The translations under genes were made by a program, and so were the position numbers. Positions 2,691 to 9,480 of a stretch of DNA of 64,000 nt are shown here, piece after piece; the stretch's first letter is position 1; the number at the start of each line of letters is the position of its first letter. Under the pieces are notes generated by a model. The model was not told where the DNA came from and ran no database searches. It saw nothing but the letters and a program-made list of their open reading frames with translations. The DNA is taken from the sequence record NC_019526.1; one strand, 5' to 3'.

Positions 2691-2800
2691 ATTTTTACCT
2701 CTTTTACTTAAATTTACTTGACTTTGTATTTATATTAGAGTACATTTGTGTAGTAAAAATATTTGAATACTAAAAGTTGTTAATTATTTAAGGTGTTTAA

Positions 2801-3223
2801 ATGAGATATGATGTTATAAATGATGTTAGATCTGTTTCTGTGGTTAATAAAAAGTACTTCTATAAACCAAAAGGTAAAAACAATAAGAAGTATGAAACCA
2901 TGATTGATGAATACGGAACAGAAGTGATTTGTAGTGATGTACCACTTGATTTACCAGAATTATCATATGAATACAATTCTTCAATTGAATACAATGGTGT
3001 TGAATTTATTTATAGAACGTATATTCGTGATAATTATGAAATAGAAGATGATGTAATATACAGACGTATGACAGATTACACTGAAATGGATGAAGATGAG
3101 CTATTCCAGTACTCATTGGTATTCGAGAATGATAATTTTTCATTTCATGATGCAGTTAAAATACAAAAATGGTTAATTATGAGATATCGTGTTGTTAATA
3201 CCACGATTAATGTGGATTTATAA
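2801..3223 (+). CDS. Hypothetical protein
   Basis: 140-aa ORF, AAGGTG RBS, TTGACT-N17-TACATT promoter-like element upstream. Confidence 0.65.
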   Translation: MRYDVINDVRSVSVVNKKYFYKPKGKNNKKYETMIDEYGTEVICSDVPLDLPELSYEYNSSIEYNGVEFIYRTYIRDNYEIEDDVIYRRMTDYTEMDEDELFQYSLVFENDNFSFHDAVKIQKWLIMRYRVVNTTINVDL

Positions 3224-3234
3224 GAGAGATTATA

Positions 3235-3693
3235 ATGCCTGGAAAACCAGAGAAAATTTATGACAATACAGAATTAACCATTATACTGAAAAATGTAAAC
3301 AATTACAAGAATCTAAGTCCAGAAGCAAGGGAGATATTCAAAGAAACGAATATCAAGTACAAACCGAGCGGTGCTGAAAGACCCTATGATATGGATCATA
3401 TTTACTATATGATTAGAGTTCTAACTGAGGTGTCACTTGATTCAGTACGAAAGAGTTTAATTCTAAGGACAGGTGTAGTATTATCTAACAAGTCAATACA
3501 AAGATATAAGCGTGTTGTAATAGAAGTATCAAAAGCATTGTTATGTACACACAGAAATGGTATTGCTTTGCATATCAAAAAAGAAGAAGGAAAACACTAT
3601 TTGACAGATCAACAAAGTTCCAGATTGAACACTTTAAGGAAAAAGGGTGTCCCTATTGAGGACATGATAAATTACCTACAGAAACTGCTCTAG
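3235..3693 (+). CDS. Hypothetical basic protein, possible DNA/origin-binding
   Basis: 152-aa basic ORF with AAGAGA RBS; stop abuts the 36-bp repeats; function inferred from position only. Confidence 0.65.
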   Translation: MPGKPEKIYDNTELTIILKNVNNYKNLSPEAREIFKETNIKYKPSGAERPYDMDHIYYMIRVLTEVSLDSVRKSLILRTGVVLSNKSIQRYKRVVIEVSKALLCTHRNGIALHIKKEEGKHYLTDQQSSRLNTLRKKGVPIEDMINYLQKLL

Positions 3694-3812
3694 CCCAGTA
3701 TTCATGCGGGTTGTAGGAATTAGGGACACCTTTTTGTGTGTTTTTTTGGTGCAGTGTCCCTAATTCAGACCAAGAACCCAGTATTCATGCGGGTTGTAGG
3801 AATTAGGGACAC
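3694..3812. repeat. Two identical 36-bp direct repeats with an inverted 13-bp half-copy between them
   Basis: CCCAGTATTCATGCGGGTTGTAGGAATTAGGGACAC at 3694-3729 and 3777-3812; GTGTCCCTAATTC at 3754-3766. Confidence 0.95.
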
Positions 3813-4108
3813 TCTATTATTAAATTCATACTTTTTCCTGTCCTTAATTCAATAGGTCGCTACGCTCAAATATTGATCTTCGTCACTCCGTTCCTCGATC
3901 AATATTAAAATCGGCAATTTGCGTTTTGTTCTCGATTCGCAAGCGAACCAATCACAAACCCGCAGCGAATTGCGAATCTCCCTTCGGTCAGTCAGTAACA
4001 CTGCTTTTTGGAGAAAGCAACTCTCGGAGTGATGAAAAACGAATTCCATTCGCCTCATGAAAAACCAACGAATAGTCGGTTCTGTTGAATTACTTGAATT
4101 ATAATTGT

Positions 4109-4415
4109 CTGTATTCACTTCTAAGGAGTTTTATACACTTCCTTAGTGGTTCTATGTCTTAAACAAGAAAACACATCAGAATGCAATACAGGAATTCTCG
4201 TAGCTATTATCAAAGCAGTTACTATCCATTGTAATATCTGCTCCATTAAAAGGACGCCCAATTCAGTACTGAAAAACTTTTGTGAGTAAGTCATTTCAAA
4301 CTGATTAATTTAAGGACACCCATTCAAATTAGCTGTATCCACTTCTAAGAAGTTTTATACAATTCCTTGGTGGTTTTATGTCTTAAACAAGAAAACGCAT
4401 CAGAATGCGATACAG
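4109..4415 (+). repeat. Two imperfect 83-nt direct repeats, each closed by a 7-bp stem (candidate structured RNA or ssDNA element)
   Basis: 4109-4191 and 4333-4415; CTGTATT...AATACAG versus CTGTATC...GATACAG. Confidence 0.9.
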
Positions 4416-4444
4416 AGCGTTTTATGTGGTGTTACAGAAATAAC

Positions 4445-4467
4445 AAAAGGAGCACAAGGCTCCCTTT
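4445..4467 (-). terminator. Probable terminator after the gp5-like gene
   Basis: AAAAGGAGC-ACAAG-GCTCC-CTTT hairpin just 3' of the stop at 4475. Confidence 0.55.
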
Positions 4468-4474
4468 GTTATTA

Positions 4475-7135
4475 TTACTGACATGCCTCAAGACGACGTG
4501 CCATAAACTCGGCACGTCTTGTTGTTTGACCATACCATGCAGAGTTGCGAATGTGTGCCGCCGCCAGGCGATAGTTTCCCTGTGCCATAGCACCAAGCAT
4601 ACCCGTAAATTGTTGTACGCCCCCTTTACCCATCTGGAATACCATCTCGACTAGTACAAGTTGAGCCATATATGGTGTTTTCATCTTATAAGATGCATAG
4701 ATAGAACTTGCATCGTTGATTGCCTTTGTACTATCACGAACCAACATTGCATCAGCTTGTTCTTCAGTAATACCTGAACTGAAGTTTTCACCACGTAATA
4801 CTAGGTGTCCATAACCAATAGTTGGGAATCCTCTACTATCAGTATAAGTCCAGAATTTATCATTTCTAAAGTACCCTTTTGCTTGTTGATATTGTTTAGT
4901 ACCTTCAAACTCTTTGAGTTCTGGCATTAATGTAGAATCACCTGGTTTGATTTGCCAATCCACCGCAGTTTTATCTACTGTACCAATATTCATTTCTTGT
5001 GGGGAGTAATTAACCACTGTACTGCTTTTTGATGTTCTTGGTCGTCTAACCGGAACATGACGAGACCCACGTTGTGCATAACCAGAACCAATTGTTTGTA
5101 TCTTGGTACTAACAACCAGTTCATTACTATCATTACCAGACACCACTACTGTGTTAGATGATGTTTCTTTGGTAGCTTTACCTTGTATTAGTGTTTTATT
5201 TGCACATTCTGAACCCGTACCAGTTTGGGTAGCATAGAATAGACCAGGATCTACTGTACCACTAAAACCATATAAATTGGCTGAATCGACGCGAATTTCA
5301 AATTTCAAAATACCACTTGCAGTACCAATTTCTTGTCCTTTTTGTACTACATCTTTACTATACAATGAAGTTTTCAAACCATAAAATACTGATTTATACC
5401 CAGAATTATGTACAATATACACTGCATTATTATATATACCAACTGTACCGGCATCAGGTGCAACTACAGTAGAATTACATTGTATTTCCCAGCCATTATG
5501 ATCTGTTGTACTTCCTTTATTGTCAGTTATATTTTTACCCCAATACCCGTACTGACGAATAATACCATTACATGGCATTAACATGTGAAGACCTTCATAT
5601 GTTTGGGAATAACCATTCATACCAGTATCAGTCATTAAATCTTGTGTCTGTACTTGAGATGTTTCTGGGGCGTATGAGATGAACTGTACGGCCTCCTGTT
5701 GTTGAGCCTGTACCAACTGTGGCTGGACGTCATTCGCAGGTTGTGGATGTACTGGTGCCGTAGTTGAACCACTTCCTGAACCATTGTAACCCGTATCTAC
5801 GGTACTACCATGATTTGATGCATCCTGCCAGTTTGAAATATTATGAATATGTTCATTAAGTCCAGCATTTGGTGTTTTAAAGTCCGGTGCCATAAATTCA
5901 GCAGTACCCTTATTACCTGAAGCATCAACTGTAAGATTCTGCCCACCACCACTGATATTAGTGGATGAATCACCGATGATGTTAGCAGTTGAACCTTTCA
6001 TGGAAACATTACTACCAGCAGTCACATCAGTACTACTACCGCTTTGTAAACGTAAAGAAGCAGCCGTCACCAATCGTAAATCTGCACCACTATTGATAAC
6101 TACTTGTCCTTCTATTTTAGAATCCAATGAACCAAGTAATTCAAGTTTAGTATTACCACTAATACGAGCATTAAGATCCTGTCCAGTTTCTATATTACAT
6201 GATCTACCAGCAACCATATTAATATCCTGACCAGCACGAATGTTAATATTTTTATCGCAGTGAATATTAATATCTCCATCACCGGTAAATGATATACGAG
6301 CAGTACCATCACGATTGATTAATAAAATATCACCAGTTGCCTCAGATAACATCAACTGAGCACCACTACGAGTACGCAAAACAATACCTTCATTGGTTCT
6401 TGCTCCCACCCTGGTATCATTCACTGGGTTGTTGAATTGTGTATCCTGATAAGTATCTGGATCATCATCCCATGAAGGAACATTAAGTTCATCATCGGTA
6501 TATCCATCATCTAGTACAAAACTATTACCCCTTGGTGTACTCATACCATATACTGTACTAATCATTTGTCTGGTACTACTTCTATTAGCTACACCAGCTT
6601 CTTTGTCGTATAAAAGGTTTTGTTTTTTTAAACCTTCAACGATAGGAACATTGACATATTTTTCATTTTGATCAGTACTGATGGTATTTCTGTCATAATC
6701 GGTAACTGGTAATGGAGAATCTGTACCACTATATTGTGATGTAGTGGAAGTTGCCATACCTGGAACCATTGTGTTCATTCGTTGTTCGTATATACAACCA
6801 ATCCAGTAAGCTTCATGTGATCTACCCTGAATGAATATAACAATTACTGGACAGCCTACATCGGGAGGTACCGCCCAGAATCCATAACCTTTTGGATACT
6901 GACCGTATGCATCAGCACTCGGTACACCTGGGGTTTTACCTGCAAATGGAGACATATAAGAACATTCAATCCATGATTTCTTATCGTCTCGTTCACTTTG
7001 TGAACCCTGAACCCATACTTTAATTTTACCACTCATAGTAGGATCTCGGTTGTCCATAACAATCGCTACCTGTGGATAAGCTGGGTCAAAACGACCCAAC
7101 TGTTCTTTTGCATACTGTTTACTTGTATCTACCAT
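4475..7135 (-). CDS. Baseplate central spike (gp5/VgrG-like): OB fold, beta-helix, degenerate M23-like domain, C-terminal lysozyme
   Basis: DNRDPTMSGKIKVWV...GFWAVPPDVGCPVIVIF (gp5 OB fold), beta-helix repeats, EHIH, C-terminal EFEG/TIGYGHL lysozyme. Confidence 0.9.
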   Translation of the reverse strand: MVDTSKQYAKEQLGRFDPAYPQVAIVMDNRDPTMSGKIKVWVQGSQSERDDKKSWIECSYMSPFAGKTPGVPSADAYGQYPKGYGFWAVPPDVGCPVIVIFIQGRSHEAYWIGCIYEQRMNTMVPGMATSTTSQYSGTDSPLPVTDYDRNTISTDQNEKYVNVPIVEGLKKQNLLYDKEAGVANRSSTRQMISTVYGMSTPRGNSFVLDDGYTDDELNVPSWDDDPDTYQDTQFNNPVNDTRVGARTNEGIVLRTRSGAQLMLSEATGDILLINRDGTARISFTGDGDINIHCDKNINIRAGQDINMVAGRSCNIETGQDLNARISGNTKLELLGSLDSKIEGQVVINSGADLRLVTAASLRLQSGSSTDVTAGSNVSMKGSTANIIGDSSTNISGGGQNLTVDASGNKGTAEFMAPDFKTPNAGLNEHIHNISNWQDASNHGSTVDTGYNGSGSGSTTAPVHPQPANDVQPQLVQAQQQEAVQFISYAPETSQVQTQDLMTDTGMNGYSQTYEGLHMLMPCNGIIRQYGYWGKNITDNKGSTTDHNGWEIQCNSTVVAPDAGTVGIYNNAVYIVHNSGYKSVFYGLKTSLYSKDVVQKGQEIGTASGILKFEIRVDSANLYGFSGTVDPGLFYATQTGTGSECANKTLIQGKATKETSSNTVVVSGNDSNELVVSTKIQTIGSGYAQRGSRHVPVRRPRTSKSSTVVNYSPQEMNIGTVDKTAVDWQIKPGDSTLMPELKEFEGTKQYQQAKGYFRNDKFWTYTDSRGFPTIGYGHLVLRGENFSSGITEEQADAMLVRDSTKAINDASSIYASYKMKTPYMAQLVLVEMVFQMGKGGVQQFTGMLGAMAQGNYRLAAAHIRNSAWYGQTTRRAEFMARRLEACQ

Positions 7136-7146
7136 TATTATTTCCT

Positions 7147-9480
7147 TTAATTGGTATCAGAATTAGAATTTGATGTAGAATCTGAACGTTTTAATGCACG
7201 AACTACTAATGCTGCCTGAAGTTGTTGTGTAAATGAACCGCCATTAGAGAACGTACTAACTACTTTATTAACTCTATAAAAAGAACTATTAAAAATTGTT
7301 GGGGTACTTACATCCAAAATACCGGTATTATCATTAATAGAAACAACTGGTTTAATATTAAGTAAAAGATATGCTTCAGTATCCAGATAGTTAGCATAAT
7401 AAAAATCATCAACATCCAATGATATTTCTTGTCCATCCTGAACAATTTGTTTAATGTATTTTAAAAAAGAATAATCACTCCATCCCAACCAGTAAGGATC
7501 TCCAACAACTTTCATGTCAAGATTCATTAGAAAAGGGCGAACATAATAATTATCACGCATGTTACGCCTAACCATTTCTTCTGAACTACTATTATCATTA
7601 ACGGAAGCACTTGTGGTAGTGTAGTTATTCTCTGCTTCAGTAGGAACTGCGTAAATTAAATTATCACGAGTGGTAATATTACCAGTATCGCTTCCAGTAC
7701 CACTGTGCTCAGATGAAACGTTGTCATTGTAATCTTCTACGTATTCTCGGTTAACTTGAACTTTGAAGTTATTAAGTTCATCCTGTTCTTCTTGTGCTCC
7801 AACTTTTTGTAATGGAATAAGTGATTCATTAACTTTTTTAACGAATTGTTTTTGTTCATCTGTTAATACAGTACCAAGTTTTTCTTTTGTTTTTAAATCA
7901 TAAGCAACTTCCCATGCATCCGGTAGTGTTTTGTACTGAACACCGTCCAGAATAAACGGAGTACTGGCATGAGTACCACCAATATTTTTAGTGTCTTGTA
8001 TTGGTGTGGGGTTGCGTGTTGTAGCAACAAAAAACTGTTGATCGAATTTTAAATCTAAATTTAAAATTTCCTGGTTAAGACCCGTAAAATGATAATTATA
8101 AGTTTTGGCTTTTATTTTTGTTTTGTTATCACTTGGATCTATATATTTCTTAGCCTCATTAAAAAATGTTTCAAAATTAAATCTTTCTTTTTCCAAATCT
8201 TTCTCATGAACAATATCACCGAGTTTATATGGTAAAATATTAAAAATAACTTTATATACAGTAGTATTTCGATATGGATCAAACCCCACATATTCCTGTA
8301 CTGGAATGATATTAACAAATTGACGAACACTTTGTACATCTGCTGGATTACCACAGTTATCAAGTACATCATCGATTATTCTTGAAACTGGAGTACTGGC
8401 ATTCCATGACAAATACTTTGAACCTTGTTGACCTGTACTTGTCTTACCTACTTCGGAACTTTGTTTAGAATCATAATTGATATATAAATCTTTAAGAGAA
8501 GGAGTGACTCTTAATTCAAAGAATTTTTGATCAGAAAGTTCACTAAACAATGGGACAAGATATCCATATTGTCTCATTGACATTTCATTTAATTTATCTT
8601 CTAAATCTGCACATAATTCGTCAAAATATGCAGCAGTGCAGTTATATTGTTCTTTTAGTGTCCATGAATTATTATCAACTAAACTTCTTGTGTTAGCCAC
8701 TAATTGCATATTGTATTTCATTACGCTACCAGTTTGAGAAGCCTGTGCCAGTACTTTAATCATACGCACTGACCATTTTCTGGTAATATCAGGAATAACT
8801 GTTGGTGCTCCATCTTTATATCCAATAAATTTTAATTCGAGAATAAGAGGTACATCACCAAATTTCTTATAGCCAAGTTTGTTGCTTAATACAATTAATG
8901 TATCATATAAACTCATACTATTATTTTCAGTAACAGAAATTTCATATGTATTAGAACTATAACAAGTGGTTAAACCTGGAGAAGCTGGAACTGCGTTAGT
9001 AATTTTAACATCAGTAATACTATAATTAGAGGTAACACCACTTTCAGCAATAATATATTCTTGTGATTCCCAGTTTGGCTCTTTGTTAAACATTTTGAAA
9101 TCATCCGGTGATAATGCATAAAGGGAAAAATGCCATGTGTAATTATCATACTGTAATAGAACATTTTCATAATTAACTACATAGTCATTAAAATCTTTTC
9201 CATAAAATACACCATCTAATGGTCTATCTGTGCCATTATTTTCTGGTTGTGGGTTCGCCGCAAATTTGTTATTACTAATAGCACTAACATCATTTTTAAA
9301 AGAATTTACTTTATTTTGTAATATAGAAGAAATGTCTTTTGTAGCACTACTTTCGGATGTTGTAGTACTTGTTGAGTTTGATACACTGCTTGTAGTACTA
9401 CTTGATGCTGTTTTAGCTTGTTCTACATCATCAGCAAATGTTTGTGCCTGTTTTACTAGATTACTTAAATTGAATGCCAT
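7147..9480 (-). CDS. Baseplate hub-like structural protein
   Basis: 777 aa; LDMKVVGDPYWLG and YRVNKVVSTFSNGGSFTQQL motifs resemble gp27/gpD-type hubs; sits between spike and gp53-like genes. Confidence 0.7.
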   Translation of the reverse strand: MAFNLSNLVKQAQTFADDVEQAKTASSSTTSSVSNSTSTTTSESSATKDISSILQNKVNSFKNDVSAISNNKFAANPQPENNGTDRPLDGVFYGKDFNDYVVNYENVLLQYDNYTWHFSLYALSPDDFKMFNKEPNWESQEYIIAESGVTSNYSITDVKITNAVPASPGLTTCYSSNTYEISVTENNSMSLYDTLIVLSNKLGYKKFGDVPLILELKFIGYKDGAPTVIPDITRKWSVRMIKVLAQASQTGSVMKYNMQLVANTRSLVDNNSWTLKEQYNCTAAYFDELCADLEDKLNEMSMRQYGYLVPLFSELSDQKFFELRVTPSLKDLYINYDSKQSSEVGKTSTGQQGSKYLSWNASTPVSRIIDDVLDNCGNPADVQSVRQFVNIIPVQEYVGFDPYRNTTVYKVIFNILPYKLGDIVHEKDLEKERFNFETFFNEAKKYIDPSDNKTKIKAKTYNYHFTGLNQEILNLDLKFDQQFFVATTRNPTPIQDTKNIGGTHASTPFILDGVQYKTLPDAWEVAYDLKTKEKLGTVLTDEQKQFVKKVNESLIPLQKVGAQEEQDELNNFKVQVNREYVEDYNDNVSSEHSGTGSDTGNITTRDNLIYAVPTEAENNYTTTSASVNDNSSSEEMVRRNMRDNYYVRPFLMNLDMKVVGDPYWLGWSDYSFLKYIKQIVQDGQEISLDVDDFYYANYLDTEAYLLLNIKPVVSINDNTGILDVSTPTIFNSSFYRVNKVVSTFSNGGSFTQQLQAALVVRALKRSDSTSNSNSDTN

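Follow-up and report, generated by a model that had tools for sequence, protein, structure and literature searches.

The duplicated element of the Klebsiella jumbo phage vB_KleM_RaK2 is an A-B-A direct repeat with a period of 224 bp, situated in the non-coding end part of an insertion that is specific to Alcyoneusvirus, and its right end carries a short motif that is common to RaK2-like phages, IncX1-type plasmids, T5-like phages, Weberviruses and several groups of prophages and jumbo phages. The window analysed here is the whole 64,000-nt stretch corresponding to positions 62001-126000 of NC_019526.1, and coordinates are given within it unless another record is named. An earlier note on this DNA had read the two elements as a multibranch RNA with compensatory base changes. 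That interpretation is partly supported: the stretch is non-coding, belongs to no recognised family and has a plus-strand bias, while the evidence goes against a compensatory multibranch RNA. The reading that we tentatively prefer, and to which we give a little less than an even chance, is that a young, recombination-born A-B-A duplication holds one complete and one truncated motif, the motif being a shared DNA recognition site. For RaK2 this is deflating, in that the simplest view of the "covarying ncRNA" is of a duplication that arose recently within accessory, non-coding DNA. More useful is an unannotated motif of 35-45 nt that recurs in prophages, in siphoviruses like T5 and T1, in a jumbo myovirus and in about 950 plasmids of the IncX1 type.

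The locus matches RaK2 at 100% identity, and nine other Alcyoneusvirus records match it at 97.7-99.4%. In the RaK2 annotation the repeat region is flanked by ORF075 on the plus strand, which ends at 3693, and by gp5 on the minus strand, annotated as a baseplate hub/tail lysozyme, with its stop at 4475. In two related jumbo phages, Turkey3 of Escherichia and GAP32 of Cronobacter, gp5 directly adjoins the genes for the endolysin, gp25 and wedge in that order, and the intervening RaK2 DNA is therefore a lineage-specific insertion in the baseplate operon (Table 1). It contains ORF074 and ORF075, both on the plus strand, followed by about 780 nt of non-coding DNA. Searches of Pfam and PADLOC gave nothing above noise for either ORF. 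The only matches of ORF074 are to PHROGs of unknown function, no homologue of ORF075 was found outside Alcyoneusvirus (an ORFan of the genus), and a structure prediction for ORF075, made in search of an RNA- or DNA-binding fold, was unusable (pLDDT 39). The convergent gp5 (minus) and ORF074/075 (plus) units have in common one terminator-like hairpin, whose equivalent is annotated as a terminator in the record of phage Muenster. No sigma-70 promoter was found on the plus strand at the copies, the regional total of sites being that expected by chance, and the spacer holds a single weak minus-strand sigma-70-like site (4235-4206). The element, proposed to be antisense to the baseplate operon, is antisense to no baseplate gene: it lies downstream of the gp5 stop in the 780-nt non-coding gap, where only the doubtful ORF077w overlaps it.

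The repeat stretch itself is non-coding, and the two small minus-strand ORFs annotated in this gap, ORF076w and ORF077w, are probably non-genes. Six genomes keep an intact ORF077w frame, 2 have frameshifts in it (two one-base deletions each) and Muenster lacks it. For ORF076w, 3 of 9 genomes have insertions or deletions that disrupt the frame and lead to internal stops. Neither ORF gave a match in Pfam, PHROG or PADLOC. The annotations of RaK2, K64-1 and RCIP0023 include ORF077w, and the records of several relatives annotate neither ORF. A small plus-strand ORF that looks alike in RaK2 copy 2 and in the first IncX site (both start (A/T)TGGTG and read through the conserved word described below) was rejected because stops close it in two prophage groups and its frame is shifted in L015.

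The two copies of the repeat are 94 nt long, 88% identical and spaced at 224 bp, and the 83-nt cores originally described fall within them. The duplication is real and is not due to chance, because a 20-mer common to both copies occurs twice in the window against 0.03 expected. No further copies were found elsewhere in the window or in the records of relatives, each genome having two adjacent copies (Muenster one). The stems and substitutions reported for the copies are likewise all present in the sequence: the 7-bp closing stem reads CTGTATT/AATACAG in copy 1 and CTGTATC/GATACAG in copy 2, the CTAAGGA/TCCTTAG hairpin of copy 1 is partly kept as CTAAGAA/TCCTTGG in copy 2, and a second arm changes from TTCT to TTTT on one side and from ACAT to GCAT on the other. 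The closing stem makes up the outer portion of a more extensive, imperfect inverted repeat, I3 (24 nt, 75% complementary). Each 83-nt core has a 15-nt word at its ends, direct at 4177-4191 and 4401-4415 and inverted at the left ends of the copies. Inverted and direct words are complementary at 11 of 15 positions over a span of 83 nt, a level reached by 2 of 200 shuffles (copy 2).

Table 1. Features at the repeat locus, in coordinates of the 64,000-nt window
Feature	Position	Strand	Description
Alcyoneusvirus-only insertion, ~1.8 kb	2691..4474	.	Separates gp5 from endolysin-gp25-wedge; based on Turkey3/GAP32 gene order
Annotated ORF076w	3849..4058	-	Small hypothetical ORF
Copy 1 of 94-nt repeat	4098..4191	.	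Core 4109-4191; ends within the shared motif; local hairpin only -1.5 kcal/mol
Inverted degenerate 15-nt word, left end of copy 1	4109..4123	-	Copy 2 equivalent 4333-4347
Annotated ORF077w, 57 aa	4121..4294	-	Only annotated ORF overlapping the element
130-nt spacer between copies	4192..4321	.	Spacer plus one copy is the 224-bp unit missing from phage Muenster
Copy 2 of 94-nt repeat	4322..4415	.	Core 4333-4415; 13 variable columns of 94 among 8 genomes
Complete motif instance	4390..4435	+	A-rich lead, word CAGAATGCGATACAG (4401-4415), GCGTTTT and flank
Bidirectional intrinsic-terminator-like hairpin	4439..4473	.	Inverted repeat I9, 15-nt arms, 93% complementary; terminator scan and fold

Within Alcyoneusvirus, phage Muenster has a single copy, with a copy-1-type 5' flank and a copy-2-type 3' flank. 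We infer that this hybrid-flanked copy is the product expected of recombination between the two repeats, although it could equally represent an ancestral single state rather than a deletion. Copy 2 of OU509535 carries copy-1 states, so gene conversion operates at the locus. Copy 2 is also the most variable segment of the locus: about half of its variable columns (Table 1) are conversions, and the corresponding figures are 5 of 94 columns for copy 1, about 3% for gp5 and 0.7% for ORF074/075. Conservation of the element therefore does not exceed that of the DNA around it. Beyond these genomes, a metagenome scan with the RaK2-specific 5' part yielded one further Alcyoneusvirus-like contig and three chance matches. 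The duplication would be a by-product of recombination, one copy and the spacer being gained or lost through homologous recombination between the 94-nt repeats, and conversion between the copies would give rise to states that appear compensatory.

One such appearance is at position 7 of the closing stem. Across ten related genomes, pair 7:77 occurs as U-A, U.G and C-G and never as C.A. U-A is found in copy 1 of two genomes, U.G in most of the other first copies and in Muenster, and C-G in copy 2 and in copy 1 of one metagenome relative. The pairing states claimed to be compensatory are hence seen, but they concern a single pair and gene conversion can explain them, the U.G state also being expected from a copy-2 conversion tract that covers the 3' end alone.

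Outside Alcyoneusvirus, only the right-hand third of the element is conserved, namely the 15-nt word CAGAAYGCGWTACAG followed by GCGTTTT(AG). The conserved block as a whole consists of an A-rich lead, the word in the form (C/T)AGAAYGCGWTACAG and then N-GCGTTTT, often followed by AG. We built a covariance model (R1) from 39 distinct instances gathered by a pattern that fixes the word and GCGTTT, so that conservation within the instances is partly circular. This model scores the block at the right end of copy 2 at 50.7 bits (E ~8e-12), with no other significant match in the 64 kb, and gives copy 1 with its flank (4166-4209) 9.5 bits (E = 3). The complete RaK2 instance hence comprises the right end of copy 2 and a further 14-20 nt outside the repeat. 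It is the only complete one in RaK2; in copy 1 the repeat boundary at 4191 interrupts the motif. The conserved loop, or word, of this family is what the earlier note describes as the second arm of a closing stem, on its 3' side.

In the plus-strand-equivalent orientation the block can fold as AGAAYGC, an 8-nt loop and GCGUUUU, with an invariant G.U pair and a C-G/U.G alternation, and the G.U pairs of this upper stem form on the plus strand only. The predicted RaK2 hairpin spans 4396-4428 and lies 10-20 nt upstream of the intrinsic terminator; hairpin and terminator together fold at -28.8 kcal/mol on the plus strand (z = -5.4) and at -27.8 kcal/mol on the minus strand (z = -4.85). A lower stem extends the hairpin in some members, among them L056 and L062 with long perfect stems of -22 to -23 kcal/mol. 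Read in a fixed register, 73.4% of lower-stem cells pair, compared with 72.0% in shuffles. On the DNA, the block reads as phased words of about 10 bp, and its long and short forms differ by one 10-nt unit. The short forms, as in T5 inverted repeat B and at 4058-4093 of L025, are without the 10-nt middle unit and no hairpin is possible in them, while the T5 long form keeps the words and loses the top of the stem, leaving a weakened hairpin. No other member has an exact complement of the word upstream of it, and a tolerant scan found a partner in the IncX type only. A literature search for the motif letters returned only an unrelated PCR primer, and the motif matched no known operator consensus in any test, nor was a binding factor found.

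When the non-coding region was used in a sensitive BLAST search, unrelated phages matched segment 4380-4425 only, always in unannotated DNA: Klebsiella Weberviruses at 85-87% over 46 nt, and about 200 T5-like phages at up to 91% over 32 nt. E. coli plasmids accounted for about 1189 places in 600 genomes, typically two to four per plasmid, and 953 plasmids in PLSDB hold the IncX motif region, including the IncX1 plasmid pECTm80. A pattern scan of IMG/VR gave 31 stretches, located in contigs of T5-like or Webervirus-like type, in prophage-like contigs of 38-41 kb that form two groups, and in contigs 142-246 kb long. By comparison, a set of one genome per species (185,579 species) gave only 15 stretches, several of them plasmid-like or probably chance. 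The motif is nearly absent from chromosomes and is unannotated in every record examined. Such sharing among replicons with unrelated flanks normally indicates a common exploited host factor or a recombination-prone module boundary.

The surroundings of the motif vary. Its orientation relative to neighbouring ORFs is mixed; it is also found inside tail and baseplate operons, and in three groups it is antisense to the tail/baseplate operon. In L016 and L019 a terminator on the same strand precedes the motif by 74-84 nt, and an annotated one in T5 ends about 50 nt upstream, which places the motif outside the upstream transcript in these cases; terminator adjacency to the motif is itself inconsistent across the family. 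Neighbours connected with replication include DnaA boxes in T5-like phages and IncX plasmids (bioRxiv 10.1101/866236), Rep O and DnaT-domain genes in the prophage-like contigs, and an annotated DnaB-family ATPase about 1.8 kb from the motif in L016.

While the other motif groups have single words only, IncX1 plasmids resemble RaK2 over a larger unit. In pN31c and pECTm80 the spacer between repB(pir), the replication initiator gene, and stbDE/phd-relE holds two direct units of about 84 nt with inverted word ends, 189 nt apart (PMC3332091 for the pECTm80-type region). In the IncX copies, where the span is 83-84 nt, the inverted word is complementary at 12-13 of 15 positions, a level that 0-1 of 200 shuffles attained, and the RaK2 element aligns with the profile of IncX site 1 over at least 65 nt. 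With the same inverted-word span and this alignment, a two-copy unit of about 83 nt is therefore common to RaK2-like phages and IncX1 plasmids. The resemblance has its limits, in that the interior of the plasmid unit is barely alignable to RaK2 and gives no common fold, and the plasmid region also has iterons and DnaA boxes. Nor do the arms covary, A/T variation in the word breaking the pairing in L048 uncompensated. Neither PMC3332091 nor the records assign a function to the IncX1 units.

A second known setting is Repeat Region 3 of T5-like phages, where the same motif is found in a conserved untranslated region of the terminal repeat (features of AY587007.1), known as the injection-stop region (Davison, bioRxiv 10.1101/866236). 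In T5 it occupies 9263-9308, between palindrome C/terminator and palindrome D/IRD', and a short form of it overlaps inverted repeat B; in the T5-like phage saus132 it stands just before the DnaA boxes. RaK2 and T5 are alike in that the motif sits among repeats and palindromes of unproven function. They differ in that the T5 copy is diverged (26.6 bits) and is not annotated as a feature of its own, and in that RaK2 has neither an adjoining DnaA-box array nor a terminal-repeat context. As the motif occurs both in the untranslated region linked to the two-step injection of T5 DNA and in the replication/stability region of IncX plasmids, a single explanation would bear on both systems. Existing transcriptome and protein-occupancy data for T5 or IncX could help to tell a site on DNA from one that acts in RNA.

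With low confidence, we favour a DNA-level reading on the pattern of the sequences: lower-stem pairing close to that of shuffles, the existence of short forms, mixed orientation and replication-control neighbours. The motif may be a site recognised chiefly at the DNA level, by a factor that the host encodes or that is widely shared in some other way, and the plus-strand hairpin would then be secondary, perhaps under little or no constraint in RaK2-like phages. No binding factor having been found and the instance set being biased by its pattern, the DNA reading is therefore a preference and not a demonstration.

The main rival to a DNA site is a plus-strand RNA hairpin, formed at the 3' end of the ORF074/075 transcript or as a small RNA, which would stabilise the RNA or bind and titrate a host protein, possibly as an anti-defence decoy, in which case copy number would matter. 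This is possible, though we think it unlikely. In its favour, the G.U pair and the C-G/U.G alternation of the upper stem work on the plus strand only, the module of hairpin and terminator is what would be expected at an RNA 3' end (with the minus strand almost as good), and the motif stands alone in unrelated phages and plasmids while nearly lacking from chromosomes. Copy number does change, from four tandem 69-nt units in the Webervirus-like genome L022 to one in phage Mingus_MM1, with two in IncX and RaK2. Two further points count against a DNA site, namely that pair 7:77 is never C.A, as selection on a plus-strand stem would give, and the long perfect stems of L056 and L062. Against it stand the mixed orientation, including the antisense placement in three groups, the upstream same-strand terminators of L016, L019 and T5, the covariation of the lower stem, which is not above shuffles, and the short forms and T5 itself, which cannot form it. 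The motif also varies rapidly within Alcyoneusvirus, and no gene for a partner protein lies near it.

A broader version, in which CAGAAYGCGWTACAG and GCGUUUU make up an undescribed strand-specific hairpin of RNA or ssDNA that unrelated enterobacterial phages and conjugative plasmids would carry on its own to counter a shared host factor or defence system, its dosage set by duplication, strikes us as improbable. If it were true, the dosage would be two units in RaK2-like phages and IncX1 plasmids and four in tandem in one Webervirus-like genome. A known system of similar layout is the phage PhiTE pseudo-ToxI; such pseudo-antitoxin RNA repeats are reportedly carried by phages that escape type III toxin-antitoxin systems. 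Like them, the motif family offers a short non-coding phage unit, tandem changes in copy number (L022 compared with L012) and related copies on plasmids. RaK2 differs in that its copies are not tandem and no ToxN-like gene is present. A type III toxin-antitoxin locus proper has ToxI-like direct repeats in tandem, placed immediately before a gene for an endoribonuclease toxin of the ToxN/AbiQ type, and was rejected for RaK2, where the repeats are 224 bp apart, lie downstream of ORF075 and have no ToxN-like gene nearby.

The original proposal, that each 83-nt unit is a multibranch plus-strand ncRNA with a 7-bp closing stem under compensatory evolution, now has little probability. The three pairing states of 7:77 agree with it, as do the three other substitutions, which the genus alignment confirms to be tolerated as G-U pairs on the plus strand only, and the inverted ends of the IncX units at the same 83-84-nt span. 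The copies fold only modestly better than shuffles on the plus strand (z = -2.4 and -2.8), but the minus strand folds about equally well (-2.2 and -2.7). RNAalifold on the copies from related phages, suggested at the outset as a check, gave 0 pairs changed on both sides within the genus on either strand, and over the RaK2 and IncX units together it gave neither a closing stem nor a consensus fold (-3.1 kcal/mol). With these results and a lower stem pairing about as in shuffles, covariation provides no case for a structured ncRNA. The 3' arm is in addition the family word, which usually has no partner and whose variation in IncX is uncompensated, one copy is dispensable in Muenster, and the element is fast-evolving.

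Database comparisons bear out the observation that the element belongs to no recognised family. ARAGORN found no tRNA or tmRNA in the whole window, the sole tRNA likeness being the 7-bp closing stem, and a match of 20 identical nt with a tRNA gene of metagenome contigs is no more than that pattern would give by chance. Rfam 15 at gathering thresholds gave no match in the window, its best sub-threshold match being sraA (25 bits against a threshold of 56, E = 0.29), and none at the motif in 14 other loci. The paper on PA5oct ncRNA offers a precedent for ncRNA expression in related jumbo phages.

We give likewise little probability to a reading in which the motif or unit is a signal of single-stranded DNA that folds when the duplex is opened or transferred, a comparison drawn by context with the single-strand initiation (priming) signals of plasmids and phages. 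The latter are strand-specific ssDNA hairpins that direct primer synthesis and are defined by functional assay. The context is suggestive in the replication region of conjugative IncX1 plasmids, where the units are close to iterons and DnaA boxes, and in the Rep O/DnaT-domain and DnaB-family neighbours mentioned above; the imperfect palindromic architecture, with G.T-tolerant pairing on one strand, is also compatible, and ssi-like palindromes are accessory parts of small enterobacterial replicons (bioRxiv 10.1101/2022.12.05.519187). On the other hand, the motif also lies inside tail and baseplate operons, the RaK2 locus has no origin-like composition, and the short forms cannot fold.

Very improbable is a minus-strand reading, in which the copies code for the ORF077w C-terminus or serve the gp5 transcript as its 3' UTR or as an additional terminator. 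ORF077w is annotated in three records, but its frame is shifted in 2 genomes and absent from 1, and it has no family match. In the scan for terminators, CGCATTCTGATGCG with the T-run after it came up on the minus strand as a weak candidate, in copy 2 only; in the motif hairpin the U-run belongs to the stem. Against this reading, the minus-strand hairpin is weakened in copy 2 of K64-1, phiKp_21 and L065, and a strong terminator already follows gp5.

Two classes of mobile element were also considered and rejected. A miniature inverted-repeat transposable element would not fit, with no flanking duplication visible and only two adjacent copies per genome; the terminal inverted repeats are imperfect (11 of 15), and in other elements the conserved block extends past the right inverted repeat. 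An integron attC site is an imperfect palindrome whose outer core sites are conserved, which an integron integrase recombines and which flanks gene cassettes; here the ends CTGTATY/RATACAG differ from what we take to be the attC core sites, and the insertion contains no integrase-sized gene.

A parallel in layout is found in the PeSL cassettes of T4-type phages, which are said to combine an early sigma-70 promoter with a stem-loop at many intergenic sites per genome (as described by Arbiol, Comeau and Krisch). The cassettes are intergenic repeats with stem-loops that flank small accessory ORFs and let the segment between them be gained or lost by recombination, a pattern with which the A-B-A arrangement of RaK2 and the single copy of Muenster are consistent. 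RaK2 differs in having two copies per genome and no convincing sigma-70 promoter. As a separate observation, the A-B-A layout with loss of one unit has some resemblance to an integron cassette.

In Turkey3 and GAP32, the operon comprising gp5, endolysin, gp25 and wedge genes is unbroken. The same operon is interrupted in Alcyoneusvirus by a 1.8-kb insertion, which carries two ORFans on the strand opposite to the operon and whose non-coding part has a slightly higher G+C content than its neighbours (0.41 versus about 0.32). The motif (the conserved 15-nt word followed by GCGTTTT) occupies a comparable position and orientation in a group of 38-39-kb prophage-like contigs (L029 and relatives), where it lies antisense to the operon, with a 263-aa ORF on one side and a gp25-like baseplate gene on the other; in RaK2 it follows gp5 and precedes endolysin-gp25. 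Tail genes flank the single motif unit of phage Mingus_MM1; at the matching position, a 47-kb Webervirus-like IMG/VR contig (L022) has a tandem array of four 69-nt units, and the motif forms the end of every unit. The 41-aa ORF annotated over the Mingus_MM1 unit is probably spurious.

Coordinates of the motif and of associated features, by locus
Feature	Locus	Position	Remark
1.8-kb insertion	RaK2 window	2691-4474	
Second repeat system	RaK2 window	3641-3859	directly 3' of ORF075 stop
Perfect 36-nt direct repeat (repeat analysis of window)	RaK2 window	3694-3729 and 3777-3812	spacing 83
Inverted copies of 13-nt GAATTAGGGACAC	RaK2 window	3754-3766 and 3838-3850, plus one within ORF075	alternate with direct copies
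Motif	L029	3087-3132	
Tandem units	L022	2050-2301	
Motif unit	Mingus_MM1 (L012)	1199-1243	
Region with motif, palindrome and DnaA boxes	saus132 (L013)	1560-1720	
Motif	T5 (L063)	9263-9308 (record)	
Putative primosome-assembly-like stretch	pN31c (L014)	3800-3880	
Motif, two copies	L017	3501-3546 and 6091-6135	2.6 kb apart

In T5-like phages (saus132, T5), a perfect 20-nt palindrome that looks like an SOS (LexA) box begins no more than about 35 nt past the motif, and DnaA boxes come next. The T5 copy lies in an unannotated gap extending from palindrome C to palindrome D. On the IncX1 plasmid pN31c, the first motif unit is preceded, at a distance of about 130 nt, by a stretch that may resemble the primosome-assembly region of ColE1/pBR322. 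The motif occurs twice in a chromosomal island of E. coli that adjoins an integrase gene (L017), with the first copy in a 1-kb gap without genes.

In two metagenome contigs (L064 and L067), a tRNA gene has, in its anticodon-arm/variable region, a 20-nt block in common with the 5' part of the element that is specific to RaK2; chance alone would be expected to give about this number of hits to the search pattern.

Beside ORF075 we also observed a second repeat system, in which GAATTAGGGACAC forms the final 13 nt of the 36-nt direct repeat; all four GAATTAGGGACAC sites in the 64-kb window fall within this system. Because direct copies of GAATTAGGGACAC alternate with inverted ones, alternative hairpins of 13-14 bp can form.
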